DNA of 64,000 nt, taken from assembly GCA_965235115.1 (NCBI GenBank), contig OZ249447.1, positions 20,274,001 through 20,338,000 of the forward strand, given 5' to 3'. Positions 22,405 to 55,704 of this stretch are shown piece after piece. A model generated the notes under the pieces. That model was not told where the DNA came from, ran no database searches, and worked only from the letters and a program-made list of their open reading frames with translations. The DNA comes from Laetmonice hystrix (Eukaryota). A program made the translations under genes and the position numbers. Each line of letters opens with the position of its first letter. The stretch's first letter is position 1.

Positions 22405-23871
22405 AGATGTATGATGTTGTGGTTGTGTTTTTCCGCAGGTTCTCCGGGTGAAGGTTCAGGAGTGCAGTCAGTACATGACATGTGACAGATGTATGATGTT
22501 GTGGTTGTGGTTTTTTCCAGGTTCTCCGGGTGAAGGTTCAGGAGTGCAGTCAGTACATGACATGTGACAGATGTATGATGTTGTCGTTATGTTTTCCTCT
22601 AGGTTCTCCGGGTGAAGGTTCAGGAGTGCAGTCAGTACATGACATGTGACAGATGTATGATGTTGTCGTTATGTTTTCCTCTAGGTTCTCCGGGTGAAGG
22701 TTCAGGAGTGCAGTCAGTACATGACATGTGACAGATGTATGATGTTGTGGTTGTGTTTTTCTCCAGGTTCTCCGGGTGAAGGTTCAGGAGTGCAGTCAGT
22801 ACATGACATGTGACAGATGTATGATGTTGTGGTTGTGTTTTTCTCCAGGTTCTCCGGGTGAAGGTTCAGGAGTGCAGTCAGTACATGACATGTGACAGAT
22901 GTATGATGTTGTGGTTGTGTTTTCCTCCAGGTTCTCCGGGTGAAGGTTCAGGAGTGCAGTCAGTACATGACATGTGACAGATGTATGATATTGTAATTGT
23001 TGTTTTTTCTAGGTTCTCCGGGTGAAGGTTCAGGAATGCAGTCAGTACATGACATGTGACAGATGTATGATGTTGTGGTTGTTGTTTTTTCCAGGTTCTC
23101 CGGGTGAAGGTTCAGGAGTGCAGTCAGTACATGACATGTGACAGATGTATGATGTTGTGGTTGTGTTTTTCTCCGGGTGAAGGTTCAGGAGTGCAGTCAG
23201 TACACGACATGTGACAGATGTATGATGTTGTCGTTATGTTTTCCTCCAGGTTCTCCGGGTAAAGGTTCAGGAGTGCAGTCAGTACATGACATGTGACAGA
23301 TGTATGATATTGTGGTTGTTGTTTTTTCTAGGTTCTCCGGGTGAAGGTTCAGGAGTGCAGTCAGTACATGACATGTGACAGATGTATGATGTTGTGGTTA
23401 TGTTTTCCTCCAGGTTCTCCGGGTAAAGGTTCAGGAGTGCAGTCAGTACATGACATGTGACAGATGTATGATATTGTGGTTGTTGTTTTTTCTAGGTTCT
23501 CCGGGTGAAGGTTCAGGAGTGCAGTCAGTACATGACATGTGACAGATGTATGATGTTGTGGTTATGTTTTCCTCCAGGTTCTCCGGGTGAAGGTTCAGGA
23601 GTGCAGTCAGTACATGACATGTGACAGATGTATGATATTGTGGTTGTTGTTTTTTCTAGGTTCTCCGGGTGAAGGTTCAGGAGTGCAGTCAGTACATGAC
23701 ATGTGACAGATGTATGATATTGTGGTTGTTGTTTTTTCTAGGTTCTCCGGGTGAAGGTTCAGGAGTGCAGTCAGTACATGACATGTGACAGATGTATGAT
23801 GTTGTGGTTGTGTTTTTCCCCAGGTTCTCCGGGTGAAGGTTCAGGAGTGCAGTCAGTACATGACATGTGAC
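22405..23871 (+). repeat. 82-bp tandem array, 18 copies; unit = last 34 nt of intron (with acceptor AG) + first 48 nt of the PSI1 exon
   Basis: Exon-start copies at 22439, 22521 ... 23742, 23824; the copy near 23170 has lost its AG by deletion. Confidence 0.95.
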
Positions 23872-23924
23872 GAGTGTCTCGGTGCCAAGGATCCGTTCTG
23901 TGGGTGGTGCGTCCTCGAGAAAAA
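23824..23924 (+). CDS. PlexA: Plexin-A exon, PSI1 start ([33 protein letters not shown]), phase 0-2
   Basis: ttttccccag|GTT ... AA|gtgagc; PSI signature C..C..C....DPxCGWC. Confidence 0.92.
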
Positions 23925-24918
23925 GTGAGCATCCTTGATCTTACTACATGAAAGACATCTGTGCGGATCTCATGAATTAATTCCTTGGATCCGGCAGATA
24001 GCATTGTGGCTTTGACCAGTCAGTGTAAACGTCTTATAAAACATATGTTTAGCTTTGATATTTTAATGTTTATTGTCTATAGTCGACAGGAAAGTGAGTG
24101 CCATGGTTTTGATATTTAGGAACACGTTCTCGCAGTGACCATCCTCTTGTCTTTGATTTTTGATTTAAATCCGACAACGACAAATGTTGGGATTGTGGAG
24201 TGCTTTTAGAACGATGGAATATGGTTTGAAGTTGAGAGTCTGCATTGATGTGGGACAGGAAAGCTGAAAACGTTAGAAATGGGCGACGGAAATCCATGGA
24301 ATTCAAACATGTGTTTCTGACCGCAGGGGAAGGAAGTTGGAGAAGGTGACTTAGTTCACTGTGTCTGCTCCTTGGCTCAAAAAGAAACAGAACATTAAAA
24401 GCTCAGTTAACTTATTTACAGGAAGAGGGAATTATAAAAAAAGAGAATCGACAGGCTGAAGCAATGGCAAGGTCGTCTCCATTAGGACTTCAAGGAACAC
24501 TTAAAAATGTCCATTTGGTGACTTAACAAGGTGGCTTAGGCCAAAAAACGGACCATGGAGAATTATCTTTGTGTTTTAAGCCACAACTAATTGCAGGAAG
24601 GTGTTCCTAGAGAAAGACTTCCAGATCAATAGGACATTTTAAGAGACCATTTGCCATTTGCTTTCAATATTTTGCGAAAGAAAATTCACTTATATCACTT
24701 CAGAGAAAACGCCTGGGGATTTCGAATTGTTTTTGTTTGAATAGTTTACTTTTTGCCACGATAAAAGATTGAATTGATTTAAACGTCAATCTAATCAGTC
24801 AATCTCCGAGCCGCCTCGTTGATTAGTTGATAATGGTAAATAGGATTTGAGGCGTACCCCAGGCGGGGGGTTGTTTTCACTAGGTTGTTTATAAACGTTG
24901 TTGTGTTTTAATCAAAAG

Positions 24919-25051
24919 GTGCGGTAAGAAGACTGAGTGTGAGAACTCGGACCATTCCCGCAGATGGCTCCCCTACAGTGGCACCCAGTGTACCAGTATA
25001 CAGAACATCATACCGCCTCAGGTTCAGATCAAGCCAAACGCCGTGTCGAGG
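24919..25051 (+). CDS. PlexA: Plexin-A exon, PSI1 end (CGKKTECENSDHSRRWLPYSGTQCTSIQNIIPPQVQIKPNAVSR), phase 2-0
   Basis: tcaaaag|G ... AGG|gtaagt; frame-compatible with both neighbours. Confidence 0.9.
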
Positions 25052-25129
25052 GTAAGTCAGACTACGGCAAGTTAGGTGTAGTAGGCTTTGCCGCTTCATC
25101 GAACTGGACAAGTAACGCATGATTACTAG

Positions 25130-25433
25130 CAGGGTTTCCGCCAGAAAAAAAATTAGGGTACGGACCAGAGGAGGGGTTAGGGTTAGGCTAACCCTAACCC
25201 CTCCTCTGGTAACTGCTGTTACAGATATGTGAATTAATCAAATAAAGACTGCATATACTGTACAACATTATATTTGATTCCTTCAAGTTGCTCAAGGCAT
25301 CATGATCATCACTCAGGTTTTTATCACTTAATGGAGAAATGGTTACCCAACGATTTTCTGGGTACGGATCCGTACCCTGGGAAAATTTTAGGGTACGGAA
25401 TTTTACCCATTTTACCCTCTGACGGAAACCCTG
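25130..25433. mobile_element. MITE-like element with CAGGGTTTCCGYCAGA terminal inverted repeats (hAT-like termini)
   Basis: cagggtttccgccaga at 25130 and tctgacggaaaccctg ending 25433; no clean 8-bp TSD. Confidence 0.55.
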
Positions 25434-26367
25434 ACTCGTGAAAGAATAAAAAAAGATAAAATGTTTGAAAGCGTTGAAAATATATTGCATCAGGGTAGAG
25501 TTGTGCTTGGAGAGGTCAGATATTAATATAATTATATCAAAGATAAGATGATAGAAGGAAGCGCTAAGGGGCCAGGGGACATTTATCAGTGTCGCCATTT
25601 CCAAGAAGTATTACCGTAAGTCCGGAGAAAAGATGGGCCAGCTGACATGAATGATGAGTGGGAGATAATGGGGAGATGGCTGATCTCAGTAATCCGGCAT
25701 TGGTCATTGGTTGGACGGCGCCCAGCCTCCTGTGGGGGCTCCGTGAACGACTTTAAACAGGGAGGAGGGGGGAGGGGGGACACTGACGGCGCCACAAGAT
25801 GGAGGGGCAGAAAGACATTGAATCCAAAGGGGGATTCCCGCGAGTGTTTCATCTTTCATGGTAGCGAGCTGTGTCGTGTTTGGGAACTCATCCATTTGGA
25901 GCGGACCGGAGGATGCGGTCCCGTAGGACTGGTCCGACTGGTCTCCCTGTGTCACCCACCCACCCACCCCCGCTGAGCCTGGCATGGTCCAGAGGAAGTT
26001 TAGTCACCTCATTGCCCAGGAACTATTCTCATGGGTGTCTGTTCTCCTCTGGGTTTGAACAACTTCTGAAGCGGGGATTGGGAGAGAAGACAAGGTTTTG
26101 GGTTCAGAGAGAGCGATATTAGGAGAACGCACCTGGTTGTTGATCTGTGGCGGGGAAACCGAGGCCACGCTAAGGGAACGTGAAAAGGAGTTTTGTTACG
26201 TTCGCTTGTCTAAAAGAACTTTGAAGGGTTATTTTGGCCAGGGGCCTTAGTTGGAGTAATCGGTGATGAAGTTCAAATAACTAGATTAGAATGTAGATAG
26301 GCTTCAGAACTGTTGCCATGTCGTTTGGGTGTGCCCGATGTTAAGTGGATTTTGTGTTTGTGTTCAG

Positions 26368-26551
26368 CTGACCCTGACGATCCAGAACCTTCCCAGTCTG
26401 ACCAATGGTGGATACGAGTGTGCATTCACAGGATATGGAGTTGTACGCACGACCGTGGCAACTGTAGGCAATGGACACCAGAACGACACTACGCTCATCA
26501 TGTGTGAAACACCCTACCCGAACCTTCTCCCCATCATCCCGACCGGCCGAG
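26368..26551 (+). CDS. PlexA: Plexin-A exon, TIG-like domain after PSI1 (LTLTIQNLP...MCETPYPNLLPIIPTGR), phase 0-1
   Basis: tgttcag|CTG ... CGAG|gtaagt. Confidence 0.9.
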
Positions 26552-27228
26552 GTAAGTTACCGAGTTGTCTGACAGGTATCCCAACCCTCTCCCCATCATC
26601 CCAACCGGCCGAGGTAAGGTACCGAGTTGTCTGACAGGTATCCCAACCCTCTCCCCATCATCCCAACCGGCCGAGGTAAGTTACCGAGTTGTCTGACAGG
26701 TATCCCAACCCTCTCCCCATCATCCCGACTGGCCGAGGTACAGTACCGAGTTGTCTGACAGGTATCCCAACCCTCTCCCCATCATCCCGACCGGCCGAGG
26801 TAAGTTACCGAGTTGTCCGACAGGTATCCCAACCCTCTCCCCATCATCCCGACCGGCCGAGGTAAGGTACCGAGTTGTCTGACAGGTATCCCAACCCTCT
26901 CCCCATCATCCCGACCGTCCGAGGTAAGTTATTGAGTTGTCTGACAGGTATCCTAACCCTCTCCCCATCATCCCGACCGGCCGAGGTACATTACCGAGTT
27001 ATCCGACAGGTATCCCAACCCTCTCCCCATCATCCCGACCGGCCGAGGTACGTTACCGAGTTGTCCGACAGGTATCCCAACCCTCTCCCCATCATCCTGA
27101 CCGGCCGAGGTAAGTTACCGAGTTGTCCGACAGGTATCCCAACCCTCTCCCCATCATCCTGACCGGCCGAGGTAAGTTACCGAGTTGTCTGACAGGTATC
27201 CCAACCCTCTCCCCATCATCCCGACCGG
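26514..27228 (+). repeat. 62-bp tandem array, ~11.5 copies; unit = last 38 nt of exon + donor GT + 24 nt ending in AG
   Basis: GT at 26552, 26614, 26676 ... 27172 (period 62). Confidence 0.95.
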
Positions 27229-27780
27229 AAGTGGTCTGACAGGTTTCGGAGTGTGTCCCCGACCGGGAGAAGTAAGGCAGTGATTGGAAGTGGTGTGACA
27301 GGTTTCGGAGTGGTTTCGGAGTGTTCCCCGACCGGGAGAAGTAAGGCAGTGATTGGAAGTGGTCTGACAGGTTTCGGAGTGGTTTCGGAGTGTTCCCCGA
27401 CCGGGAGAAGCAAGTCAGTGATTGGAAGTGGTCTGACAGGTTTCGGAGTGGTTTCGGAGTGTTCCCCGACCGGGAGAAGTAAGGCAGTGATTGGAAGTGG
27501 TCTGACAGGTTTCGGAGTGGTTTCGGAGTGTTCCCCGACCGGGAGAAGCAAGTCAGTGATTGGAAGTGGTCTGACAGGTTTCGGAGTGTTCCCCGACCGG
27601 GAGAAGCAAGGCAGTGATTGGAAGTGGTCTGACAGGTTTCGGAGTGGTTTCGGAGTGTTCCCCGACCGGGAGAAGCAAGTCAGTGATTGGAAGTGGTCTG
27701 ACAGGTTTCGGAGTGTTCCCCGACCGGGAGAAGCAAGGCAGTGATTGGAAGTGGTCTGACAGGTTTCGGAGTGGTTTCAG
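27229..27780. repeat. 69/59-bp tandem array, ~8 copies, diverged relative of the 62-bp unit
   Basis: gaagtggtctgacaggtttcggagt(ggtttcggagt)gttccccgaccgggagaag(t/c)aag... Confidence 0.9.
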
Positions 27781-30700
27781 AGTGTGTCAGTACGTCATTA
27801 ATCAGATAAAAAGGATCAATGTCCGTGAACAGATCACCAGGATCTGGCTGTGGGATTAGCATGGCTGACTTAATGTGTTTTTCTCGTGGGATCTTGACAA
27901 GTTTGTTACTTGCTGTTTTACTGTGTGTGATTATCACAATGAAGAAGGATCTCTGCGCGAAGTTAAATCTTTTGGATTTTCAGCGTTTTTCTACAGAAGA
28001 ACAATATTTTCCCATCTTGGTTTGTTCAGTATTAGCATTGATTGCAGGAAAATATTCGCCATGCGAGTGTTCTTTTGTCCTCGTTCCAAGAGAACAAATT
28101 CACAACGTAATAAACTGGGTATTTTCATGTCATTTGCACAATAGTTGAATTTCATTTTGTCATTGTGATTTCGAAGAAGTTTATTTGGACGGCTAGAGTC
28201 CCTGTGGTTTGTTTCGACGATAGGCTGAGCCAACAAGTAATCACCGTTGGACTGTCTGAGTGTTGGAAACGGTCCCAACAATGAGGCATTGCGAGGCGGC
28301 AGTTGAAAGCAGAGGCCTTTGTAATGTGAAGCCTTTGTGTATGGGAACTTCACATCGCAATCCTTCACATGGAACAGTGTTCCCAGTCTGTGTCCAGGCG
28401 ACTATCGGGAGGACAATATGGAATGTAAGGGTGTAGTATTCCAGGCTTAATGTTTCATCAGAGAACTTTGATAATCTTATCTTCATGCATTGTCCACCAT
28501 AGTCTCTGCATATAAATCCCTTAAATACAGCTATCTCTACCCTTGTCAAGCTGGAAGCAGAATTCAACTTTTCTTGCTAATTTGTCAGCAAGCAATAACT
28601 TTCGATTATGGCTGCCAGCTGAACAAGCATTTGGTATGGATGAACGTAATTGAATAGATTTCATATATATTTATTATTCATGGTCTCCATTGTTAGGAAG
28701 CAATGATCCAATTGTAATCGAACAAGAGCGACTTTGGAGGCAATATCACCATATTCCATAACATCTTGAGTATGCCATCATCATTGGCTGCAGCGCTCAC
28801 TAAAAATATGATGGATATTTTAAAATAGGTTTCAGCGGGTTTAATGAAGAGGCTTATATGATAACTGCCTCTTTATATTTGCTCGCTGATGGAACTGCAG
28901 GAGAAAAGAAACGTTTCTTTATGAAATATTTAGGGTCTATGAGATTGGAGAGGTGAAGTTTGAAACTTGCGACAAGCGCAGTACAAGTATATGTATACGT
29001 GGTAGTCTACCTCCATGTGTAGCATTTACTGAGCTTGTTCACCTTTACAAATCATAATCATAATATGTATAATGGGTCCATGATGTGCAATTTTCATATC
29101 AAAAGCGTTTTTTTGGGGGGGCAAAGAAGTCGAACGACATGTTTTTTTCCTTTGATTATAATTAATGTAATCATAGCCTTTCCCTTGAAAAAAATGTCGA
29201 ATGACATTTCCCTTTGATTATAAGTAATGTAATGATAGCCTTTCCCTTGAAAACGGATCAACAGTGTTCTCTTCACAAGAAATGGGACTACAATCCATTT
29301 TCTGAAGACCTGACATCGAGTTTTTACCCTCAAAAAAGACGAGCGTTCATTTTTTACGAAGAAGCAAACAGGGATTCTGGGGAACGTAATTTAATACAGC
29401 TCTATTCGGTCGGGCCTGACCCTGAAGAGAAAACATTCAGATGTAGAAGACGCTTTTAATGTATTTTGCCCGTTCTGGGTATGATATAAGGCCCTCCCCC
29501 CAGCCCCCACCCCCTCATTCTCCTAAGAAAGCTCCCCTCCAATCTCCTAAGAAAGTTCCCTCTCCAATCTCCTAAGGAAGGAACTCCTGTGACAGCCCTT
29601 ATTACCTGGGAGTCCGAGCAAGTCTGTGGTAGAAAGTAATTCCGTACATAGCCGTAGTTGAGTCCCGGTAACCATGTAGCACGCAGACCGGGTAGAATCA
29701 GGATCGTTTTCTACGGCTGGGCAGAGACAACAAACAGTGAGACTGAAGCGTTGGTCCAACTGAAGCAAACCAAGACAAACGGAAGGCTCTGGCTTGTTCT
29801 CGACCGAACGTCAGATGCAATCAGTGATACGGAGGAACAATCCGTTTTCAAGCATCGCCTACACTCACAGTAATTGCGCATAGTTAAGCCGCTTTGTAGG
29901 TAGAAAATGTGATTTATTGGCGGTGATAATGGCATACAGCCCCTGTAGGTAAGATCATTTATGTGGTTGCCAGCACCACTTTCACAGCTGAGCCCTTGAA
30001 AAACTCATCCAATGTTCAGTGGGTAACGGGAAACGGCCTGAAGCCTCAGCAACCAGAACACCGTCCATTATAAACGGACACGGGCATCAGGATTCCATCG
30101 GTCCCGGCCAAAACAGGGCTGAGAATTACTTCCATTTACTTTTGTAATCTTTCAAGGCAAGCTCACATTTATCAGTTGTTAATGTTGACTTTGCATGCGG
30201 GAGGCGGACGGTGGGAGACCGGGCGTATGTTACTCGGCAGTCGGCGGCATTGTTTCGTTTAGAGGACGGATACACGCGAGGATTCGGAGACATTGTTACC
30301 TGCTCATATGTAAGGAAGTAAATCGTGAGATTGATAATGTTCAGGATGTTCACAATTTTGGTATTTTATAGGTGGAATTCTTAGCGGAAGGTGAAGATGA
30401 GAGAATGTATATTGTGAGGAGTAAGTCTGGCAGTGGCCGGGGATGTCGGGAGAAATTATCTGTCTCGTTTAGCGGGCATTCATTGCTCGACATTCACCTG
30501 AAAAGCTGGCAGGAAAAGGAGAGTTTGTTTCTTGAGAGAGCAGAAACAAAAGGTCAGTCCCATAAACAAAAGGGCGGTAGATGGCCCCAGGCATCTATAT
30601 TGCAACGTGAGACCGACCGTAGATGGTCTGTTCCTGGATTTTTGTATGCCGGAATGGCATGACATTTTCCAAGTACATTCAAATATTGCCAATTCCCCAG

Positions 30701-32294
30701 CAGTAATTTTTTCCCCTCGGTTAAAAGATGCTGTATCGTGACACAGACATGACTTAGCGTTGATCATCTCGAGGAAAGAAGGAGAGCCTATGTGAATAAT
30801 TGAATTGACCGTAATCTAGTGTGTATCTCCCGGGATGGAGCGCGATGGAGCGCTCCCCAGGGCCGGCGCTTCATCACAGTGCTACTCTCATGCAAAGAGA
30901 CAAAATAATGCATACTAAGGGTTTCAAGGCTCTCAAGCCAAGAAGTAGAATATCAACACTGTAATTTGATTATTTTCATGGCGGGTGATAATTAGGGGAC
31001 CAGGGAAGGTCGATTGTCCTGTGACGGGTGGGGTCTGTGATGGGTAAGGGATGGGGGTGGGGGTTAGAATGAGGGTAAACTGTGACCAGATATAGGACGC
31101 GATGGGGTCAGTGACATGTGTTCCATGTGAAGTGTCCCAAGTTGTGAGGCAGTCACTCACAGCCCATACACCACCCGCCCGTCCCATTCGGCGTCCAAAC
31201 CGACCTGATGCCTGTGCTCCCCGACTTTGCATTGCTAATACGGCATTATGGAGATGCTGCCTGGAGGGGGCGTAGAGGTTGTTGGGGGGAGGGGGGTCCC
31301 AATGGAGTTGTGTTGTCGGCACATAAAACACAACCCCCCGGCCGCTCCGTTGCCGTGCTATAGAATCATTGCCCCCTGGTTCTGCAGGCGGGAGATTCTC
31401 TGCAAGGTATGCCAACATTTTAACGGGTCTTTTAACAGCTCACGGCTCGCCTGATTGTGTTGGCGGGTCCATACCTCCTCCACGCCCAGTGTCATCAAGG
31501 AAGGAGTTTGAAGGCAGCAGCGGAGCCCGGCACAGGACGGCCTCCCAGGGTTCTTTCTCCTGATCTTTTCGTCATTTCCGTGATCAAACGATCAAAGGAA
31601 AATGACACCCTTCCACTGCGGGATCTTCAAGGCCTGTTTTCTCATCCCAGGCGAGCGCCTGCCCATCAGGCTAGGATCAGGTCCGTCTAACTTCACGCTA
31701 CAAGTGTCACACTCAAAATTAGACATCATTCTTTCCCAAAAAATGTGATGTTTTTTTTATTTAAATGTAAGTTACTGATGATGTCTTGTCAAGTGGGCGT
31801 CCATATACTGAGTGGGGAGTCCGTGGTGTATTATGATTGATTTAGTGGTAATCCTGTCGTGTGGTTCTGTTAATCTTATATCACGCGAACGCTGTGAAGT
31901 AGATCTTAGTGGGATGACTCGCCGCTCTGATCCGCTTAGTACACGAGATTCCCGTCACAATGCCCTGTACCTTTTACTACAGATCTGTCAGAGCTTTCCT
32001 CCCGGACCTGCCTCGGGCCCAGGAGTTAGGATGAAAATAGGTCAGGCTTGAGTAATTAGGCTGACCTCCTGATCCCAGAATCCCAGCGATAATTTCATTT
32101 AAACGGTTCATTAGATGGTTAGATTCCTAATGGAGGGGGAAGGATTGCGATACGGGGAAAGAATTTGGCCAGTATTTCCAGAGGTAAGGCCCTTCAGAAC
32201 GGCTGGGCCCAACGTTCAACAAGAGAGTTGCACATGCCTATGAAAGGTACACATGCCCTTCGTGGGGAAACCATGCGTGGAACACAGATTGGGG

Positions 32295-32770
32295 ACCGGC
32301 GTCAGACACCGTGCATTAACCGTGCACAAACGTGCACTAAACAGACACGGACAGGCGTCAGACACCGTGCACTAACAACAAACGTGAACTAAGCAGGCAC
32401 GGACAGGTGACCGGCGTCAGACACTGTACACTAACCACAAACGTGCACTAAACAGACACGGACAGGAGACCGGCGTCAGACACCGTGCACTAACCACAAA
32501 CGTGCACTAAACAGACACGGACAGGAGACCGGCGTCAGACACCGTGCACTAACCACAAACGTGCACTAAACAGACACGGACAGGGGTCAGACACCGTGCA
32601 CTAACCACAAACCGTGCACTAAGCAGACACGGACAGGAGACAGGCGTCAGACATCGTGCACTAACCACAAACCGTGCACTAAGCGGACATGAGACAGGCG
32701 TCAGACACCGTGCACTAACCACAAACGTGCCCTCCGACAAACGTGCACTAACCACAAACGTGCACTTAGC
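32295..32770. repeat. 59-bp minisatellite, ~8 copies
   Basis: ggcgtcagacaccgtgcactaaccacaaacgtgcactaaacagacacggacaggagacc. Confidence 0.9.
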
Positions 32771-34206
32771 AGACAAACTTGGCAGATTCAGACGCCCAGC
32801 TTAAACCATAGCTGTGAACACGGTGAAGCACTAATCTTCAGTAGAAATGTTTTTTCAGTGGACCATCTTAGTAACCCGCAATCTTATAAAGCATGTTACC
32901 GTGGAAGGAAGAAAAGGATCTTTCTCGCAATGTGTAGAAAAATGTTTAAAAAAACACCAATAAAAAAACTCAGTTGGAATCTCTCTCCCCTTTCTCTGTA
33001 AAAGCAAACCCTTGAGCCAAGCCCTGCTAACACAGGACTGTGATACCCGGGAGAAGCGATATTAGTAGGAGGATACAGCCAAGTGCGTGAACCAGATCGA
33101 GTCTCTGAATTATGAAGTTTGTTCAGTAGATACTGACAGGAAGCTTAGATACTGGGATATCTCCAGCTGGGCAAATACCCAAGGAACATTTCTCTTCAGG
33201 CTGTTAAACGCGCGGCGTACAATTATAGGCACGAAGATGCTCGATGGCTAGACTTCCCTCGGCATTATGTACTCTTGTATGATCTTGAGATGGCTCACTA
33301 TCACGTTCTACACTCTGGTGTCTACATTAGCCATTTATCAACGAGATCATTTTGTTAGTGTTGAATTCGGAGTTTAAAAAAAGTGTTTTATTTCGGTTAC
33401 AATAACGTTTTTGTTTGTAAAAGAATAAGTGTTTTGCACGTAATTCGGGCGGTATTGTAACGATGTCTGGCGATCTCCCGTCCACACTGAATCAATACGG
33501 CAGAGAAGTGGGTGCAGACAACCATGCAGGGTGTCATCTACTTCTACTCGCGGACAGTGGACATCTAAGGAACCACGGCTTTCTAAAAGGTCTTTTCTAT
33601 CTGGGCGGCCCGACTGACACTGCAGGATAGAGTCCGATATGGCCCGGTCGCCGCTGGCCTCGGTCATATCCAATATCGCCCACTATACGGTGTCTCCAAG
33701 CGATCCTCATTGAGTCGGACAAGATAAAACGGCCGTCGATAAGATCAGTTCTGGCCCGTTTGCTTGTTTTCTTGATCTGGCGTCCACGAGACTGGCTGCT
33801 TGCCCGTATTGAGCGCGGGTGGTTGGTCAGGCCGTCAGTGGTGGGGTCTGACGCCTTCACAGTGGAGGGCCACACCGGTGATGGGTCGGGGGAGGCCTGG
33901 CTGGGGTCTGACCGGAATACTGACCACTGACTGGACACTGGTCATTGGCGCCTACAGCTGCTACTGACCCAGTGCGCACACGGTGTCTGGTGAGGACGTG
34001 GGCCGTATGGTGGCGCTGTGTAAAGGAGGGGGTGAGGGTTTTGAGGGCGTTGGAGCACTGAATGAGGGTTGTTCAGGACAATTTGTAACATGAGGTAGGG
34101 GCGGAGGGGTATCGTTAATATTGGCGACTGTGAGGCGGGGAAGGAGAACGGCAGGAGAACAAACCGGGGGAAATAGCTGGTCGGTAGGTAGTGTGGCCAG
34201 AAGTGT

Positions 34207-34637
34207 GGTAACGAACACTTGTCAGAAGGTAACGACGGTCATTAGAATGGTAACGAACACTTGTCAGAAGGTAACGACGGTCATTAGAATGGTAACGAAC
34301 ACTCGTCAGAAGGTAAAGACGGTCATTAGAATGGTAACGAACACTTGTCAGAAGGTAACGACGGTCATTAGGATGGGAACGAACACTTGTCAGAAGGTAA
34401 CGACGGTCATTAGGATGGTAACGAACACTTGTCAGAAGGTAACGACGGTCATTAGGATGGTAACGAACACTTGTCAGAAGGTAACGACGGTCATTAAGAT
34501 GGTAACGAACACTTGTCAGAAGGTAACGACGGTCATTAGGATGGTAACGAACACTCGCCAGAAGGTAACGACGGTCATTAGGATGGTAACGAACACTTGT
34601 CAGAAGGTAACGACGGTCATTAGGATGGTAACGAACA
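34207..34637. repeat. 42-bp minisatellite, ~10 copies
   Basis: ggtaacgaacacttgtcagaaggtaacgacggtcattag(a/g)at. Confidence 0.95.
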
Positions 34638-42405: not shown

Positions 42406-42491
42406 GTTGTTTAGCCTGAACGAATTGTGATTAGCTACAGCCGGTGTTTGAAATCTGAGTCCTGCTTATGTTTGTTTTTTTTTGTTTGCAG

Positions 42492-43949: not shown

Positions 43950-45504
43950 ACCGAACCTCTGCTCGCCACACGGCCAATCATTAAGGTCTCAGGGCATTAA
44001 ATCCAAAGGGGAACGGAACTTCAATTTTACCCAGCAGCATGTGCGTCTTAGCTGTAAGCCTGCCAGAAAGAGGCCGTGCTTGTATTGGGTCCGCTGGCCC
44101 GGTTCAGATGGACAGGGCTGACTGAGATGGGTAATTAGTAGGGAAGCTGGGACTGGACTGGCGGGACTGACGCCTCTAGCGTCTAGTATACCCGAGGACA
44201 ACTATCGAGGTCTTTATTTGACATAAATGTCCTTATGTTTCTCCCGAAGAAACTCCCTGATGACATTTGGTGAAATGAGTTTTTAAGCAGCACAATGGAA
44301 GAGAAACTCAAGCAGGGATTGTGTACACTAATGGAATCAGAATGATTTTGTTTCAGTATTTTTTCCCCCGGGTGGGGGTGGTGTAGTGGATTAGAAACAA
44401 AAGATGGCGAATGCTACACGAATTGAAAAGGTTTTAATCCCTTAGTTATCTGGTCTTGCATTTGACTAACCAGATGTCTGACATTTGCTGTTGTCATGGC
44501 AACTGACCTGTGAAGATTAAACACTCCGGCAACATTGACTGAGGTCCCACGTCACTTGCCTTGTTTGGCACGTGCCGCGTTTCAATAGGCACATCAAGGT
44601 TTTTTTCCGTTGCACGTATTAAAGAGAAAGAAAAAGATAGAAAAGCAGGCATGGTATTGTGATGGGCGCCATTGATGTAAATGAAGTTATTTGAAGCCTG
44701 AAGTTGTGCTCATGCGTGAGAAAACTGGATGCTCATCTGGCAACGGGAGGCAAAAAGGTGCCGTGTAGTGTTGACTGCGATTACAGTGCAAGACTAACCA
44801 TAAAAAGGAGCGGAATACATAGTGGAAACAGAGAAATGGAAATCTGGGATTCAGGGCGGGAATAACGTGTTGGAAATTAGAAAAGGCGTTGACGTTCGAA
44901 GTCGAAATGTTCTGGAAAGAGTCTGGAATAAATGCAGGTGTGAACGGAATGTAAGTCCGCCGGAATGGAGGCCCGCCGGACCTGGATTCCTTGGTTATGC
45001 AGGTCGTAGGTCATCAACGTCGTGGTATAAGACAATATAATTAAGAAAATGTAAATGGATTAGGGTTAAGGTTAGGATTAGGGATAGGATTATAAAGAAA
45101 TATTTAAATAATACAACATCGTTGGACCTGCATTTCAGGGGGACTTGGATTCCTGTCCAACCGGGCATGAAGATTGTCCAGTTGCCATGAATCGCAAACA
45201 GCATTTTAATATTCAGTACTAACATTTTAAAACACGCCTCGACAAGGAATCTTTTTAGTGGAATGACGTTTTCATGGCACTTACTGCCATCACATTTTGC
45301 TTATCACGTTTTCTTCTTTTTGCTCCTCGCTCGCTGCTGCCTCTCATTTTCCGATGCTGTTATTTCTGTCAGCCATTTGCACACCCTCGATCTTAAGTGG
45401 CGCTCTAATAATGTTTTCAGGTGCTTTCCTTTTTCCTCCTTTTTATGAATATTCTTGATTATGTTTGTATAAACTTTAACCTCTGACCTTTTCTGTGTAT
45501 GCAG

Positions 45505-45627
45505 GTAAAGGGAAAAAGTGACAGCCCAGGCCCACAGTCATGTCCCCGGTTTGAGTCGAGCTTCACCGAGATCTTAGTGCCGTCGGATAGCGAATACAAG
45601 GTCAAAGTTCGCGCCGTCAATCTGCAG
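45505..45627 (+). CDS. PlexA: Plexin-A exon (VKGKSDSPGPQSCPRFESSFTEILVPSDSEYKVKVRAVNLQ), phase 0-0
   Basis: tgtatgcag|GTA ... CAG|gtcagt; GP..CP motif closing PSI2. Confidence 0.9.
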
Positions 45628-45712
45628 GTCAGTAGAGGTTTCATTGAGCGGCAACGATTCCTGGTAATCTGCAGGTCAGTAGAGGTTTCACTGAGCGGCA
45701 ACGATTCCCGGT
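45619..45712 (+). repeat. 47-bp tandem duplication spanning the donor of exon 45505-45627
   Basis: aatctgcag|gtcagtagaggtttca(t/c)tgagcggcaacgattcc(t/c)ggt x2. Confidence 0.9.
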
Positions 45713-46659
45713 GAAAGATTTTCATAAACATGTTGAAATAGATGACAATCTCATTGTCATTTTGTGGGAACACATTTTACGTATTAATGCGGGAGTCGGT
45801 TTGTATGTAACAAGAAGATTTAAATGTTTTTTTTTTATTTATTCCAATACAACGTTATACAGTGTTGACGGGGGATCAACACAAAATGCTTAAAGTGGAT
45901 ATTGTGGTAGTCGGTTGTTATCTCGCTTCGGTTACAATATATCACCAGAGGGCGCCACTTGGCGTCAGGAAACTAGGCGCTCATCAAATTGCCTCATTGT
46001 AGGCACTGAACAGTGAACCAGGCAGTTGAAATTTCCTTTTTGACAGACGACAGGGGTAGTTTGCTGGCTTCTTAACAGCAAGGAAGTCCAGGCGGCATTT
46101 ATGCTGCCTTGTATTTGGTTTCAACATATTTCATGTCTGTGTTTCAAACATTGAGGATACTATCAGTTCGTGCCAGGGATGGATAGTGATAGTGAAAAGG
46201 ATTTGTGTGTGCTTGTAAGGGCATGTTTTAAATGTACAGGATTATTGTATGGTAGCTATAGTGAGGTAGAATTACCTTTTCAGCGAAGGGCATGGTACTT
46301 TTATCTGTATTTCTAAATGTGATCTGACGACTGACCACAGGGAGACGAGATGTCAGGAACCCCGCAGACATTATTTGTTGCATCGCATAATTTACATTGC
46401 AGACTATATCTCGTCCGCCAAAGCAGTCCATATTAATGATTTATGTCTAGGGTGAAGAGATACTTAATTCTTTATTAGTTTAGAGTTAATTATAGCAAAA
46501 TATCCTCCAGAGACATTTATGACTGTTGAAGGTTGGGGACATGGTGAAGACTCCTATGCCATCTCGTCTGATACATTTAGAGCTGTAACTAATGTCTGGT
46601 CAGCCCATAGCACGGGGCTGACCAAAGTTCACTGCACGTGCACTCACATCAACCGGCCG

Positions 46660-46842
46660 TCCTATCATCAACCGGCCGTCCGCTCACCATCGTCATATCA
46701 ACCGGCCGACCTCACATCAACCGGCCGTCCTCACATCAACCGACCACTCACTCACCGTCCTCACATCAACCGGCTGACCTCACATCAACCGGCCGACCTC
46801 ACATCAACCGGCCACTCACTCACCATCCTCACATCAGCCGAC
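46660..46842. repeat. degenerate ~19-bp minisatellite
   Basis: caaccggccgacctcacat variants. Confidence 0.75.
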
Positions 46843-47096
46843 CGTCCGTCCTTGTACGAGAAGTAGGAACCCAGAAATAGGCGACCAAATTTAGCCGAAC
46901 CGAGACAGAACAGAGCTCGGAGAAGTCGCCCTGATTTAGCGCCATGTCTAATCCTGCGCCATCGTTCTTTGATTATTATTAACATAACGTCGTTTCCAAT
47001 CAGCCGACTGTGTGTATGTGTGCGCCATCTACAGCCATGTTCATTACCACTAAATGAGTATACATGCATATCGGTATGATATATGGGGACGCTGGC

Positions 47097-47535
47097 GTTC
47101 TGCTGCACAGACGGACAGACTGCTGCACTGACGGACTGCTGCACTGACAGACAGACTGCTGCACTGACAGGCAGACTGCTGCACTGACATACAGACTGCT
47201 GCACTGACAGACAGACTGCTGCACTGACGGACTACTGCACTGATGGACAGACTGCTGCACTGACGGACTGCTGCACTGACAGACAGACTGCTGCACTGAC
47301 GGAGTGCTGCACTGACAGGCAGACTGCTGCACTGACGGACTGATGGACGGACTGCTGCACAGACAGACAGACTGCTGCACTGACGGACTGCTGCACTGAC
47401 AGGCAGACTGCTGCACTGACGGACTGCTGCACTGATGGACAAACTGCTGCACTGACTGACGGACAGACTGCTGCACTGATGGACAGACTGCTGCACTGAC
47501 GGACTGCCGCACTAACGGACTGCTGCACTGACGTA
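47097..47535. repeat. 16/20-bp minisatellite, ~22 copies
   Basis: actgctgcactgac(ggac/agacag) variants. Confidence 0.9.
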
Positions 47536-49444
47536 CGGACAGAGAGGAAGAGCCGGGTTTATTTGGACAAACCTATGTAAGAAAGGAGAACCATTGGCCA
47601 GGCCGGGCCAAGGACTCTGGAAAGAGCGTCACCTGCTAGGGCACGGACCCATCCGCTAACATGGATCCATGCTCAGGACATCACCCCCACCCCCACCCCA
47701 CCACCACCACCCCCACCCCACCACCACCACCCCCACCCCACCCCACCACCAGTCGCAGCGCTCCAATCAACCAGTCGTGTGCTCAGTGCCAGTAAATCTG
47801 TAATGGAATCAGGGCGTTGGATCTGTCCACCAGCCGGCCTGACCACCTGAGCGCCATACAGACCGCTATCACACATACCACAGCGGGCGGGGCGGCCGGG
47901 TCAGCGGTTTCAGGACATCAATTCTAATGGCAGGCCAAGCTTAACCAAAGCCAGCATCGTGATTTATAAATACGGCCACCTCCATCCCCGATAGAAACGT
48001 TACACATAATCATGAACGAATCTTGTAGTCCCATAATAAGTCTGTCCCTCCGGGGAGCTTTTATTTTGAACATCAAATGCGTACAAACCTTCAGTTCAGA
48101 AATCAGGGGTGTTTTTTTTCGCGCGGAGCCGTCAAAAACTAGGGGTGAGTGACAGTTTCTTTGAGCGGCATGGGAAAATCAGTTTGAATTCTATTTCACC
48201 TGTAGTGCCTTTTGCGGTACGGTGGGGTAGGGCCCACGTGACCTGCGGTACCGTGCGGTAGGGCCCACGTTACCACCTTCACGATAATCAGGATGAACAG
48301 GAAGGCCGTCCCAAGTGTCTCATGAAAGATTCAGCCCTTCCTCAAGGGCTTGGGGACACAGCTGATGAAGCCAATTGCAGACAGCCAACTAAAAGTTTAA
48401 AGCTACACTCCAGGAAGCTGGATGCCCCGGAGGAGACGCGCTGCAGTTGTGGATCATTTAAATCTTTACCCATCCAAACCACATTTTTGTTGGGGAGTGA
48501 TTTTTGATTTCGTTCTCTCTTATAAATCCCATGGCAGCGAGGGTGATAGGTCTGGTAGTCAGATTGCAGCGAGACGTTTAGAGGCAGGATGGCACACTGG
48601 TGCCCCGGTAATGGATTGCTCCTATAAGATGTTTTGACAAACCAGCTTCTCCTCCGTCCTGGCCCTTCTCATTGGCAGTGTAATTATTGCCGAGCGGGCT
48701 CGAGGCCAGCCGGCGGCCGATGACCTGTTGGGGGCCGGGACAGACGTCTGAGACCCGGCGCAGGTTACCCGACGTGTCACGGCCTAGCAAAGGCCATCAG
48801 CCTCGAGCGACGCCCCATTGATGAAGTCGTAGCGGGCGCCGTAAAGCCTGTCAGACCAAGTCATGGTGGTATTATAAATGGCTGCGCCGAGTCGGGGCCC
48901 AGCTTGGGTCGGGCTGGCAGGTGAGCTAGGAACGGAACGTGCCACAGGCGCCTCCCGCGCCTGGCGCCTGTTACAGCGGATTCCTGGTACAGGGGGCACT
49001 CATACCTTCGCTAACCCCCCTCTAGCCCTTGCATCTTTAAATCTATTTTACATGTATAAAAACAAAGGAAGAAGGCAGTCTAACAGACACATCGGTTCTA
49101 TGTTGAAGTCATTAGGGGCGGCCGAGAGGCTCTTTGAGAAACAAACCAAAAAAGTGAACAAAATGGAATCATATTATGAAATATACATGTAGTATACCCC
49201 GCGGGGTATAATACTTATACATGCAAGTGAAACAAATGGCCATGGATGGCTTCTAGGAAAACGAAACGCGGCATAAATAGTTAATGTAAAATCACTATTC
49301 TAGAACAATTCACAGTCTGTTTGCCACTTTGGCCTCGTGTGAATTGCAGTAATTCTCAAGTCGTACATAGGAGATAGTAGTACACGGAAATGGGGGGTAT
49401 CGTCACAGGCTCCAAGTCACGAATCATTTAGTGTGTAAGGTTAT

Positions 49445-49638
49445 AGGGCCCTATCCACTAAGCCGATTTTCTTTGCGACGCCTATGCGATTTTGACATCA
49501 CTCTTTTATTTCACTGTTATTTTGAGAGTAAAGGATGGGGCCCATTTCCTTAAACAGGGAAGGCCAGCCAGGAAAAATTTCAGCATGAAATTCTACCATT
49601 AAATCAAAAATCGCATTGCCGTCGCAAGGGGAATCGGC
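49445..49638. mobile_element. MITE-like inverted-repeat element
   Basis: gccgattttctttgcgacgcctatgcgattttga (49462-49495) vs tcaaaaatcgcattgccgtcgcaaggggaatcggc (49604-49638). Confidence 0.5.
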
Positions 49639-50796
49639 ATATATCTCAGTCTACTTCGTCTCTACTGGAAAATGTGGCCGGCAATGTCAGTACTCGCTTG
49701 AATTGGAGGCTCTTCATCAAAGTTAATGTTCCTTACTTTCCTAGGCTTATATACAACCAACACCACCATGTGAAGGGACATTTCCCCGTCCCACATACAT
49801 GCAGGAAAAGTTAATATCGTCCATGCGATCATTGCCTTGGTAATTTAAGTGTCACATATGATTACCGACCATATATATTAATATATGTCCCGCTTGTATA
49901 CGTATGTTTTCATTTGCCTGACTTTGCTGGGACTAGGAATGTATGACAGCGTTAATGGGAAGTGTGGCGTACTGTGGTGTAGTATAGTAGTATAGTGAAA
50001 TGGTTGTTTGTGTCAGACCCTGGCCGGGTGGTCGGCTAGATTCATGGTGATGAGACATGTAGGATGGCGGCCAGTCAGTGCCAGGTAGACCATTCCCAAC
50101 ATCACCAATTAGCTCTCTACAAAGACCAGCAGTGGAATGGATGACCACAAGCCCTCATTGTCGGCGACTCTATGAAGAAGACCGACGCTCATTCCTCCTG
50201 CCCTCATAAAGACCGTGCAATATGCAGTGGTTCGCAGTTTTTTCCGTTTTATGAAATGTTTTCAGCGTAGAAACGACGTAGATGTGGAGAATTTATTGGA
50301 CAGTTATAGTGAGGTGGTAAGCAGAGGTAAATGGACGTTGTCAGTAATTTAGGAAAGGTGATGTGACCGCCGTGTTAAAGGGCGGGGAGAATATTTTGGA
50401 GCATTCATTCAGTGGAGACCAGGACTGGCTTGATGTCAGGGTGGACTGCATCAGTTACAGCGGGTCTCTGTGGGTCTGGTATACAGGGGTTAACGGTTAT
50501 AGCCGAGTCTTACAATAGACTGTGAAGTTGGGGGATAGTTGGGGGGAGAGGGTTCATTGTATTGGACAGCACAGCAAGGAATGACTCAGGGTGTTGTTAG
50601 GTTGGGGCAGAATGAGGCAAAAAGACTTTTTTCTTTTTACGCTCAGATAGACTCTACCTATGCATGTTGCTTGGAAATGACCTTTCCAATCATCAAACAG
50701 GAAAAAAAAGGAAGAAAGAGTGGTTCCCGTCTTGAAAATGGCCTACGGGATGTAAGCCCACCAACTAAAACTGGCGATGTCAGAGCAAAATGAGAG

Positions 50797-51020
50797 TCTT
50801 AGTGACGATACCTGATACCTGTGCCCCACCGGCCAAGGAATACAATGGATAGTTTTACCGAGAATACCTGTGTCCCACCGGCCAAGGAATACAATAGATA
50901 GTTTTACCGAGAATACCTGATACCTGTGCCCCACCGGCCAAGGAATACAATAGATAGTTTTACCGAGAATACCTGTGCCCCACCGGCCAAGGAATACAAT
51001 AGTTTGACCAAGAATACCGT
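50797..51020. repeat. ~49-56-bp tandem repeat, 4 copies
   Basis: atacctgtgccccaccggccaaggaatacaatagatagttttaccgaga. Confidence 0.85.
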
Positions 51021-51703
51021 GCTATTGTAGAACCATGGAACTATAGCGCTAGTTCTGTGGTAGAACCGTCCGCTACAGTAGCGTTCCCCGATCAGACAGA
51101 CTATGTTTGATGGTAGTTAGGATAGCCGGACGGTCAACCTGACGCCACCGATCTGGATCGAACAGATTGATAGATAATTTAACCACCCACTAAGGTGATC
51201 TGTTTAGGTTACAAACATCACAATTACCATAAATCCATACATGGTAATGTGGTTGGTTTCCGTGTTATTACTGCAGACAGTATTGCCGACTACTCTATCA
51301 CTGCCAAACTTGGGCCGTATATATAATTAGAGATGTAGGGGGGGGGGGGGGGGTCGGAGAGGAGCGTGGCGCAGTCAGGACGGTAATGGATGGCCGTTAT
51401 TAGAGGAAAAAACCGCACCAGATACCGCTAGTTAGACACGTGGCAGATAGTCGAGCCATGCCTAGTCAGGGATGAGACCCATACTTCATTATTTACGTTT
51501 CTTTTGTTGTGTTTTGTGACATGTAAATGGGATTTACTGCGGGTAGGGAGCTGAGTGTCTGCTCGGGGAGCTGACTGTCTGCTCAGGGTGTTTCGTAGAC
51601 AGTCCATGTCTGGTGTGTTTGTTATATTGTCTGTGTGTCAACGAGAGACAGAAATCGAGTCTGTAGGGGTCTGTTTCTGATGTTTCTGTTCTTGCTGTTT
51701 CAG

Positions 51704-51805
51704 GAGTTCCAAACCAATTTCAAGTGTCGGTTTAACATCGAGGGTAAGGACTGGGAGGTTCCCGCAACTCAGGATAACTCTGAGATTGAATGTGACACAT
51801 TCAAG
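51704..51805 (+). CDS. PlexA: Plexin-A exon (EFQTNFKCRFNIEGKDWEVPATQDNSEIECDTFK), phase 0-0
   Basis: ctgtttcag|GAG ... AAG|gtaagt; FxCxFNIEG motif. Confidence 0.92.
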
Positions 51806-52119
51806 GTAAGTCAAATATTCTCAACTTTATAATTGTACAAAAAGAATATTTCTGTTGGGAAAATACGTTTACATTGACCATATCTGTGACGATTATTATC
51901 ATAATGTGGGTAATGTGGTATTAATTGTGATTATGACGACATAAACTAAATTTGCTTTACCCTTTTGGTTTGACCCATCCCATTCATCTTCACACATACT
52001 TTTGTCAATTTAGAAAGAAAAATGGCAGCGTCCTCCATGCAGGCCTGCCATCTGGTGGTAAATGTGTATATTAGGCGTGCATGGATACGCGCCCTTTGGC
52101 CGAAGGTGGTCCGGACCCC

Positions 52120-52556
52120 CCTCCCCTCCCCACCCCCATCACCCTCCAGCCAGGCCGTAAGGTGGTCCAGACCCCCATCACCCTCCAGCCAGGCCGTAAG
52201 GTGGCCCAGACCCCCATCACCTCCAGCCGGGCCGTAAGGTGGCCCAGACCCCCCCTCCCATCCCCACACCCCCCCATCACCCTCCAGCCGGGCCGTAAGG
52301 TGGCCCAGACCCCCCTCCCATCCCCACACACCCCCATCACCTCCAGCCGGGCCGTAAGGTGGCCCAGACCCCCATCACCCTCCAGCCAGGCCGTAAGGTG
52401 GCCTAGACCCCCATCACCTCCAGCCAGGCCGTAAGGTGGCCCAGACCCCCCCCCCCCCCCCCATCACCCTCCAGCCGGGCCGTAAGGTGGCCCAGACCCC
52501 CATCACCTCCAGCCGGGCCGTAAGGTGGTCCAGACCCCCATCACCTCCAGCCGGGC
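52120..52556. repeat. ~39-40-bp C-rich minisatellite with insertion variants, ~10 copies
   Basis: cccccatcaccctccagcc(a/g)ggccgtaaggtggcccagac. Confidence 0.9.
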
Positions 52557-52661
52557 CGGAGGGCTCGTTGGTAACTTCAAGGTCGGGTTTATGGAGTGGT
52601 TTTTTCATCCATCAGTTTTTTTTTCTAAGGGTAGTTTCCATCATGTGGGTGATGTAGTTGG

Positions 52662-52763
52662 AGTCTGGGAGGGGGTGGTGTGGGGCAGACTCGGGGTCTG
52701 GGAGGGAGTGGTGTGTGGGGCAGACTCGGGGTCTGGGAGGGAGTGGTGTGTGGGGCAGACTCG
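52662..52763. repeat. 34-bp tandem repeat, 3 copies
   Basis: gtctgggagggagtggtgtgtggggcagactcgg. Confidence 0.85.
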
Positions 52764-53167
52764 CCAGGAATTGAAAACCCTGACCGGAAGCACTATTAAC
52801 TTTGACTCTAGTTAACGCTGATGGGGACCCTAATGTCGTACGTCCCCCGGGTAAAGAAAAGGGAAAGGTCCAGTTAGTTGTGAGCTCTTCAACACGGTGT
52901 ATCGTCAGTGGAAGGGGGGGGGGGGGGTCTGGAAACCTCCCAGGGTCCAGCGCCGCTGTCGCATTCAGTGGCGCCCCCTTGTGGGAATGAATATGGCAGA
53001 AGTCCGCCCTATGACATTTCTTTGTTATTTGTGAGTCTATACTTTCCCTATAACTGAGGGCATTTGAATTTTGGCCCGTTTCACACCCTGTTATTTTATA
53101 TGCCACTTTCCAAACGTTCTGCCCAAACGCTCTTCCTTGACCTACATAATAAACTTGGTGTTGACAG

Positions 53168-53267
53168 TTCTTGTACCAGTCGGGGACGGCCCACCTCAAC
53201 ATTCCCTTCAAAATATTCTGGGGCAATCCGCAAGGCAAGGCCCTCGACAACCCAGACAGGATACAAG
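53168..53267 (+). CDS. PlexA: Plexin-A exon (FLYQSGTAHLNIPFKIFWGNPQGKALDNPDRIQ), phase 0-1
   Basis: gttgacag|TTC ... CAAG|gtgagc; WG...LDNP motif. Confidence 0.9.
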
Positions 53268-53551
53268 GTGAGCGTAATATTATAACTTTAAGTTGAAGGG
53301 AAATTGTTGGTTTGTTTGTATCGCTTGTATATTATAACAGATTTCTATTATTGAGTATTGGCAGTATTGGCCCATGTATTGTTATGTATATATTGTATTG
53401 CACATACGGTATATAATTTCAAGCACGGCCAGTACTTAAACCCACTCGGCCACACATATATAATCAAAAGAGGAATATCTCCAGATACTCTGCCATCATT
53501 GTCCCAATAGTTATTATTGATGAATCCTCTAACTTGACTTGTCTTCTCCAG

Positions 53552-53721
53552 TGAAAGTTTACAAATGTGAGGAGATGGCAGATAACTGCGGTGAGTGTTT
53601 GACGGTGAGCCATAAGTACAACTGTGGTTGGTGCCACACCAAATGTTCCATCCAGCGCAAGTGTTCCAGCCACAACTGGCTCAACTCAAGCCTCGACTGC
53701 CCCAACCCTAAGATCACACAG
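53552..53721 (+). CDS. PlexA: Plexin-A exon, PSI3 (VKVYKCEEMADNCGECL...CGWC...CPNPKITQ), phase 1-0
   Basis: cttctccag|TG ... CAG|gtatgc. Confidence 0.95.
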
Positions 53722-54028
53722 GTATGCCTACTCCCATTGTCTGCCATTCAATCATTTGGTAAGATAGAAACAAAAGAATTTAAGATAGGTGCGATTTGGA
53801 AGTCAACTTGGAAGGTGGTATAATAGGAATGTTTGTATCCACCGGAAAATCGGAAATATGTTTTCTGTACTGGAAAGTTTCTATTAGATAATTATCCATT
53901 TTAAGGTGACTGAAGTTTTCATATTTTTATTTTCTTCCACCGAGGTTACATGTATGTCACATTTGGTCCTAGAAAGCCTTAGATTTCTTTGAACCCTGAT
54001 AGAATTATTTTTGTGGTGTGTTTGACAG

Positions 54029-54180
54029 TTCATGCCGAGGACGGGGCCGTTGAAGGGTGGCACACGGGTGACTATTGACGGTGAAAACCTGGGCAAAGTT
54101 TATGATGACATTAAAGCCGGGGTACAGGTGGCTGGACAACCGTGTGAGCCAGACCCTGCCGCTTACAAACCCGCTCAAAG
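54029..54180 (+). CDS. PlexA: Plexin-A exon, IPT1 first half (FMPRTGPLKGGTRVTIDGENLG...PAQ), phase 0-2
   Basis: gtttgacag|TTC ... AAAG|gtaagc; PxxGPxxGGTxVTIxGxNLG. Confidence 0.95.
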
Positions 54181-54340
54181 GTAAGCTCAAACTATACACA
54201 GACCACTATAGGGTCGGCATCTTATATCTGGGGGATTTCAGGACAAGCTTTACACAATATGATCAGATCTGGAAAAAAACGTGGCTAATGCGGAATTTAA
54301 CATTATGAGCGATTGGAGTATTTTTTGGGTATATTTAACC

Positions 54341-55704
54341 GGTGTCAGTGATGATGGTTACTATAATGTGTTTGATGTCGACAGGGTGGTGTGTATAACG
54401 GGTGTCAGTGATGATGGTTACTATAATGTGTTTGATGTCGACAGGGTGGTGTGTATAACTGGTGTCAGTGATGATGGTTACTATAATGTGTTTGATGTCG
54501 ACAGGGTGGTGTGTATAACGGGTGATGATGGTTACTATAATGTGTTTGATGTCGACAGGGTGGTGTGTATAACGGGTGTCAGTGAGGATGGTTCCTATAA
54601 TGTGTTTGATGTCGACAGGGTGGTGTGTTTAACGGGTGTCAGTGAGGATGGTTACTATAATGTGTTTGATGTCGACAGGGTGGTGTGTATAACGGGTGTC
54701 AGTGAGGATGGTTCCTATAATGTGTTTGATGTCGACAGGGTGGTGTGTATAACGGGTGTCAGTGATGATGGTTACTATAATGTGTTTGATGTCGACGGGG
54801 TGGTGTGTATAATGGGTGTCAGTGATGATGGTTACTATAATGTGTTTGATGTCGACGGGGTGGTGTGTATAATGGGTGATGATGGTTACTATAATGTGTT
54901 TGATGTCGACAGGGTGGTGTGTATAACGGGTGTCAGTGATGATGGTTACTATAATGTGTTTGATGTCGACAGGGTGGTGTGTATAACGGGTGTCAGTGAG
55001 GATGGTTACTATAATGTGTTTGATGTCGACAGGGTGGTGTGTATAACAGGTGTCAGTGAGGATGGTTCCTATAATGTGTTTGATGTCGACAGGGTGGTGT
55101 GTATAATGGGTGATGATGGTTACTATAATGTGTTTGATGTCGACAGGGTGGTGTGTATAACAGGTGTCAGTGATGATGGTTACTATAATGTGTTTGATGT
55201 CGACAGGGTGGTGTGTATAACTGGTGTCAGTGATGATGGTTACTATAATGTGTTTGATGTCGACAGGGTGGTGTGTATAACGGGTGTCAGTGATGATGGT
55301 TACTATAATGTGTTTGATGTCGACAGGGTGGTGTGTATAACAGGTGTCAGTGATGATGGTTACTATAATGTGTTTGATGTCGACAGGGTGGTGTGTATAA
55401 CGGGTGTCAGTGATGATGGTTACTATAATGTGTTTGATGTCGACAGGGTGGTGTGTATAACAGGTGTCAGTGATGATGGTTACTATAATGTGTTTGATGT
55501 CGACAGGGTGGTGTGTATAACGGGTGTCAGTGATGATGGTTACTATAATGTGTTTGATGTCGACAGGGTGGTGTGTATAACGGGTGATGATGGTTACTAT
55601 AATGTGTTTGATGTCGACAGGGTGGTGTGTATAACGGGTGATGATGGTTACTATAATGTGTTTGATGTCGACAGGGTGGTGTGTATAACGGGTGTCAGTG
55701 ATGA
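54341..55704 (+). repeat. 60/54-bp tandem array, 23 copies; unit = 30 nt intron end with acceptor + first 30 nt of the IPT1b exon; open in the plexin frame
   Basis: tggttactataatgtgtttgatgtcgacag|ggtggtgtgtataacgggtgtcagtgatga; translates as (GVSDDGYYNVFDVDRVVCIT)n. Confidence 0.97.

Follow-up and report, generated by a model that had tools for sequence, protein, structure and literature searches.

Tandem repeats that run across exon-intron boundaries have been named "mirages" in the amphioxus gene Adh3, according to two later papers (PMC3087553, PMC3902484, citing Canestro et al. 2002). Amphioxus mirages have since been reported in globins (BflGb6, BflGb9), troponin C (TnC), and PGBD5, at both 5' and 3' exon ends, with no aberrant mRNA and with splicing left undisturbed (PMC3087553, PMC3902484). 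A comparable layout on the donor side is the 37-bp variable number tandem repeat (VNTR) of intron 7 of human F7, in which identical donors are repeated; in 50 minigene constructs these pseudo-donors were functional, yet the 5'-most site was chosen by a scanning-type process (PMC1557585). Moreover, tandem duplication of an AGGT proto-splice site underlies the Rogers model of intron gain (PMC3087553). Here, we describe four arrays of this kind in a plexin-A orthologue of Laetmonice hystrix, located in a stretch of 64,000 nucleotides of contig OZ249447.1 (NCBI GenBank assembly GCA_965235115.1, positions 20,274,001 to 20,338,000 of the forward strand), hereafter called the window. An earlier note on this DNA had stated that no described system of this kind was known, a claim that does not survive the amphioxus mirages (PMC3087553, PMC3902484) and the F7 intron 7 VNTR (PMC1557585); for the lineage of the window, we found no published description of such arrays. 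With a probability that we put at roughly 0.8, the arrays are locus-specific intronic minisatellites of the mirage type and, most likely, tolerated as by-products of a genome rich in minisatellites.

Exactly four of the 51 splice junctions in the window lie inside a tandem array, namely the acceptors of exons E1 (23824) and E11 (55675) and the donors of exons E3 (26551) and E6 (45627), with 9-48 nt of exon contained in each repeat unit. As delimited with Tandem Repeats Finder (TRF), the head-to-tail arrays have periods of 82, 62, 47, and 60 nt, 2-23 copies, and 92-95% matches (Table 1). The observation that four of the 25 complete exons carry a repeat across a splice site is upheld to the base. 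Apart from the four real sites, 47 copies over the four arrays keep an intact AG or GT, and most of these decoys are identical or nearly identical to the real site.

Table 1. Coordinates of the plexin-A gene, the exons concerned, and the tandem arrays (positions within the window).
Feature	Position	Strand	Basis and remarks
Plexin-A orthologue, PSI1 to cytoplasmic domain	23824..64000	+	HMM and tblastn mapping, Pfam, open frame
Exon E1, PSI domain (Pfam E 7e-9)	23824..23924	+	Real acceptor 23824; junction conserved in relative
Exon E3, TIG_plexin	26368..26551	+	Real donor after 26551; junction conserved in relative
Exon E6	45505..45627	+	Real donor after 45627; HMM mapping; junction conserved in relative
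Exon E11, end of IPT domain	55675..55780	+	Real acceptor 55675; HMM mapping; junction conserved in relative
Array 1, 82 nt x 18.0, 92% match	22405..23871	+	TRF; unit unique in genome
Array 2, 62 nt x 11.4	26521..27228	+	TRF; unit unique in genome
Array 3, 47 nt x 2.0	45619..45712	+	TRF; unit unique in genome
Array 4, 60 nt (some units 54 nt) x 23.3, 354-nt higher-order period	54336..55704	+	TRF; unit unique in genome
69-nt array adjoining array 2	27242..27785	+	TRF consensus units compared by eye

The exon model was obtained by mapping onto the window a plexin hidden Markov model (HMM), derived from 11 full-length plexins of a representative search (minimum length 1,400 aa), and by refining the exon boundaries with reading frame and splice-site score. 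It comprises 25 complete exons, which extend over 23824-63633, and a further exon truncated at the end of the window; all introns are of the GT-AG type (GT in 25/25 donors and AG in 26/26 acceptors). The spliced frame of 1290 aa is stop-free and colinear, end to end, with residues 486-1773 of octopus plexin-A1 (51% identity), its identity to insect plexin A and carp plexin-A2 being 50 and 45%, respectively. Furthermore, pieces of the Pfam domains PSI, TIG_plexin, TIG, Plexin_cytopl, and Plexin_RBD were recognized in the window, and the Sema exons of plexin-A were located ~138 kb upstream of it, at C13:20135862-20137334 (the window starts at 20274001), so that the intron preceding E1 measures ~160 kb. 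A scan of the window against Rfam detected no RNA family.

On the acceptor side, the unit of array 1 joins 34 nt of intron end (polypyrimidine tract and AG) to the first 48 nt of E1, and besides the real acceptor the array holds 16 decoys, each of which has AG and a polypyrimidine tract, and one further unit that, as its translation indicates, lacks 9 nt around the splice site. In array 4, the intron end and the start of E11 contribute 30 nt each to the unit; its real acceptor is accompanied by 22 decoy copies, of which 20 have AG and two have AG changed to GG, and 20 of them equal the real-site 36-mer at all or all but one position. On the donor side, the unit of array 2 covers the final 31 nt of E3 and the 31 nt of intron that follow, with the real donor and 10 decoys, all with GT (GTAAG in six, GTAC in four), and the last 9 nt of E6 with 38 nt of intron form the unit of array 3, where a single decoy shares the nine exon bases and the first 15 intron bases with the real donor.

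The predicted outcome of decoy use differs among the arrays. Use of a decoy in array 1 would add 82n nt and then a stop, read-through of array 2 runs into stops, and the decoy of array 3, 47 nt downstream of the real donor, would add 47 nt and shift the frame. In array 4 the spacings are all 60 or 54 nt, i.e., multiples of 3, the exon frame is open from 54263 to 55945, and each unit gained through decoy use would lengthen the protein by 18 or 20 residues, with no stop. Across the arrays, the exon-proximal copy alone adjoins the rest of the exon, and an open frame is reached only via the proximal sites. The earlier note had taken the exon-proximal copy to be the functional one, and this is borne out insofar as that copy is the sole choice that is both joined to the remainder of the exon and compatible with an open frame.

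A simple course of events could account for these features. A short tandem duplication would by chance take in an exon-intron boundary, and replication slippage and unequal exchange inside the array would then expand it, in a lineage with a very high minisatellite load. The duplication would do no harm while one copy remains continuous with the rest of the exon, this being the first copy at a donor and the last one at an acceptor, and all other copies would fall inside the intron and be removed with it. Among identical donors the spliceosome would take the 5'-most, by analogy with human F7, and at acceptors it may choose the copy that alone is joined to the exon's unique part and lies nearest its donor, through exon definition and exonic enhancers. 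Stray products of arrays 1-3 would carry premature stops and would presumably be cleared by nonsense-mediated decay.

The likeness to amphioxus mirages extends to several properties: in both cases the unit is locus-specific and straddles an exon-intron boundary, be it the 5' or the 3' end of the exon; its size (47-82 bp in the plexin-A arrays) falls within the published 10-160 bp; AG or GT is preserved in the majority of copies; the genes whose introns hold the arrays are intact; and there is concerted evolution within the array, the boundary unit not being the most homogenized. In contrast, the host studied here has a plexin-A most like those of protostomes, as the identities to octopus, insect, and carp given above indicate, in favor of a protostome and not of amphioxus, and four arrays with up to 22 extra sites occur in one gene. 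Normal splicing and length instability have been demonstrated for the amphioxus mirages; for the plexin-A gene, a search for sequencing runs returned three DNA runs of one sample and no RNA run. Regarding F7, arrays 2 and 3 reproduce its layout, with a first element that straddles the exon-intron boundary and with identical pseudo-donors downstream of the real donor; the F7 repeats are few and minigene-tested, unlike the 10 pseudo-donors of array 2, which come from sequence analysis. Arrays 1 and 4 mirror this layout at acceptors, a form that lies outside the F7 work and has already been seen in the amphioxus globin BflGb6.

Regarding the origin of the arrays, each of the four units matched its own array only when the whole 627-Mb assembly was searched, so the arrays are not a dispersed satellite, and a dispersed or mobile satellite was ruled out as a candidate by the lack of any unit at other loci. 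That the units arose in situ, as the earlier note proposed, is supported by their uniqueness in the genome and by the orthologue of a relative, which is free of arrays at all four junctions (see below). Short-read contigs, from three DNA runs of one sample, possibly the assembled one, were unable to span the arrays, which would fit the view that repeat mis-assembly created the arrays or their copy numbers; we regard this view as highly improbable. The contigs run into the arrays from unique sequence and break exactly at the array edges, at 23842 and 26555, as a de Bruijn graph does at a tandem repeat. Moreover, a 112-nt unitig in array 1 (23514-23625) had a depth of 7.6x single copy, and in the assembly its 31-mers have a multiplicity that averages 8.0; this fit supports the copy number of array 1, for a sample that may be the assembled one. 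The variant units and the higher-order structure do not look like the product of a collapse or a duplication error, and similar arrays were present in paralogues.

The age of the junctions could be assessed by comparison with a related species. Among the ENA assemblies, the closest proteins showed 89-91% and 71-76% identity (91 and 76% with exon 16 as query), and the second of these assemblies (76%; ENA ERZ25767047) provided a joined 45.3 kb holding the orthologous gene from E1 onward. Its exon order is that of the window, bar one fused exon pair, and the four junctions are at identical bases, yet no array was present at any of them, nor at any other junction within this 45.3 kb. Since the relative has the same junctions without arrays, the four introns are old and the arrays came later, in the lineage of the window. 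The relative carries about eight small tandem arrays, covering ~2% of the 45.3 kb, against 31 arrays and 27% of positions 22405-64000 in the window, and, judging from this repeat content, the lineage of the window has a far higher minisatellite load. The Rogers model shares with the present case a tandem duplication that makes extra splice signals, but the plexin-A introns are old and no new intron was created; intron gain by tandem duplication between AGGT sites was ruled out, all four introns being at identical positions in the relative.

The earlier note further inferred a local amplification process that acts often enough to hit splice junctions. The number of hits expected by chance was estimated under a null in which each array starts from the duplication of a stretch as long as its repeat unit, placed at random along the gene, amplified copies being collapsed first, and a hit was scored when at least 5-8 nt lay on each side of a junction. 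In the window, four hits were seen at the 51 junctions, against 1.1-1.5 expected, with P(>=4) of 0.02-0.06 (P = 0.025 for 1.15 expected), a value that overstates the case because the window was picked for this feature. As an unselected control, three plexin paralogues on the same chromosome and the flanks of the window gene gave two hits at 112 junctions, against 1.9 expected (P 0.59); both hits were at acceptors, in arrays of 93 nt x 19 and of 50 nt x 8.7. When pooled, the 163 junctions of the enrichment test had six hits against 3.0 expected (P 0.07). In this context, arrays of the junction-spanning kind are general in the genome, at a rate near random, as the control count indicates. Local repeat density nearly explains the count in the window as well, so an amplification aimed at junctions is not needed, nor do these counts demonstrate one.

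The rival view that junction DNA is a preferred seed in this lineage, where some process tied to transcription or splicing would start duplications at boundaries more often than elsewhere, draws on the excess in the window and on the pooled count, and we consider it unlikely, given that the window was chosen for the effect and that the unselected control matched expectation. In addition, 27 of the 31 arrays of the window make no contact with a junction, and several of them leave a gap of 20-32 nt up to an acceptor or of 25-27 nt downstream of a donor, a pattern that would be expected if arrays were tolerated wherever one complete splice signal remains.

The internal structure of the arrays bears on how they grew. 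In array 1, the exon-adjacent units are 93% identical to the real unit and the most distal ones 99%, neighbors two units apart are 98-100% identical, and the proximal half forms a 164-nt higher-order repeat. Because the proximal units are the least like the real unit, and given this higher-order repeat, the growth of array 1 was internal and not a ladder from the real site; accordingly, the statement that each array grows into the intron holds as geometry, since the arrays do lie in introns, but not as a description of how array 1 expanded. The higher-order periods of array 4 (354 nt) and array 1 point to unequal exchange and turnover. Furthermore, variable columns of array 1 were unevenly distributed, with 2/48 among the exon-derived and 11/34 among the intron-derived columns, the latter all in the polypyrimidine tract (p = 0.0012, by columns), and no such bias between exon and intron was seen in arrays 2 and 4.

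Several points weigh against regarding the arrays as tolerated by-products. The near-invariant exon-derived part of the array-1 decoys is not predicted for a purely neutral array; possible causes are selection that reaches the decoys when they exchange sequence with the real exon, a T/G-rich tract prone to mutation, and the amplification of a few founder variants. The four hits against 1.1-1.5 expected in the window leave room for a modest real excess. The sequencing runs are all from one sample, possibly the assembled one. That the spliceosome ignores the decoys is an assumption of the proposed course of events. Finally, array 4 is in frame and stop-free, and nonsense-mediated decay would thus not hide the use of its decoys.

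This last point leads to the view that the decoys are used and that the arrays make isoforms, chiefly through an in-frame ladder of 60/54-nt steps before E11, each adding 18-20 residues to the IPT domain. The exon frame of array 4 is open across all 23 units, most of its decoys do not differ from the real site across 36 nt, and the exon-derived part of the array-1 decoys is conserved. However, the combination of an open frame and a unit length that is a multiple of 3 would arise by chance with a probability of ~0.13 (our estimate, 0.38 x 1/3), so the open frame of array 4 alone is not evidence of function. A protein search with this frame gave no match, and hence no sign of the array in the relative with 91% identity. 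Repeats inserted in the IPT beta-sandwich would probably misfold, array 4 is absent from the relative, the published mirages and F7 show extra sites that go unused, and arrays 1-3 give frameshifts and stops. Taken with these observations, productive use of the decoys seems to us quite unlikely. Equally small chances are given to a broader alternative, in which junctions are preferred seeds (~2-3 fold in this gene) and/or the 23-step ladder of E11 makes plexin-A isoforms of variable length, the conservation of the exon part in array 1 reflecting selection on decoys.

Under the preferred reading, that of tolerated mirage-type minisatellites, mirages are not peculiar to amphioxus and would appear wherever the minisatellite load is high. 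The gene also represents a natural experiment on splice-site choice, with 47 extra sites, on donor and acceptor sides, beside the four needed for an intact protein. The acceptor case is less understood than the donor case: the first-site-wins rule of F7 would pick the wrong acceptor copy, and RNA from the animal could therefore show how the last copy is chosen among up to 23 (array 4) or 17 (array 1). Moreover, the contrast between ~2% tandem repeat in the relative and 27% here points to a lineage-specific minisatellite burst, which is perhaps the more interesting question.

Other repeats and features of the locus were recorded. The 69-nt array adjoining array 2 shares the blocks CCCGACCGG and GTCTGACAGGT with it, as compared by eye, and has no GT donor; the shared blocks and the missing donor mark it as a probable offshoot of array 2, older and decayed. 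Intron E18/E19 (59779-60470, 692 nt) consists almost wholly of a 38-nt x 16.7 minisatellite (59806-60438), which leaves 27 nt between the donor and its start and 32 nt between its end and the acceptor. In intron 2, a 304-bp element (25130-25433) bears 16-nt terminal inverted repeats, CAGGGTTTCCGCCAGA ... TCTGACGGAAACCCTG, and its short-read depth of 30,000-87,000, against ~56 for single copy, suggests an element resembling a miniature inverted-repeat transposable element (MITE), with very roughly a thousand copies.

Three more plexin-like genes are present on the same chromosome, at 9.85, 20.10, and 20.90 Mb. Mitochondrial COX1 was located on C35; it has 12 TGA codons in frame, and its stop-free pieces do not exceed 55 aa. 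The 143-nt intron between E21 and E22 (61564-61706) also occurs in a paralogue of the same genome, at the same position (HMM 1524/1525), and in the relative these two exons are fused into one (L002 13301-13684), which looks like an intron loss in the relative. Gene calls on the contig of the relative (ERZ25767047; L002, L030-L032) read through stops, and P0182 aligns across them with 99% identity; the calls evidently result from the use of a different genetic code and do not represent real proteins.

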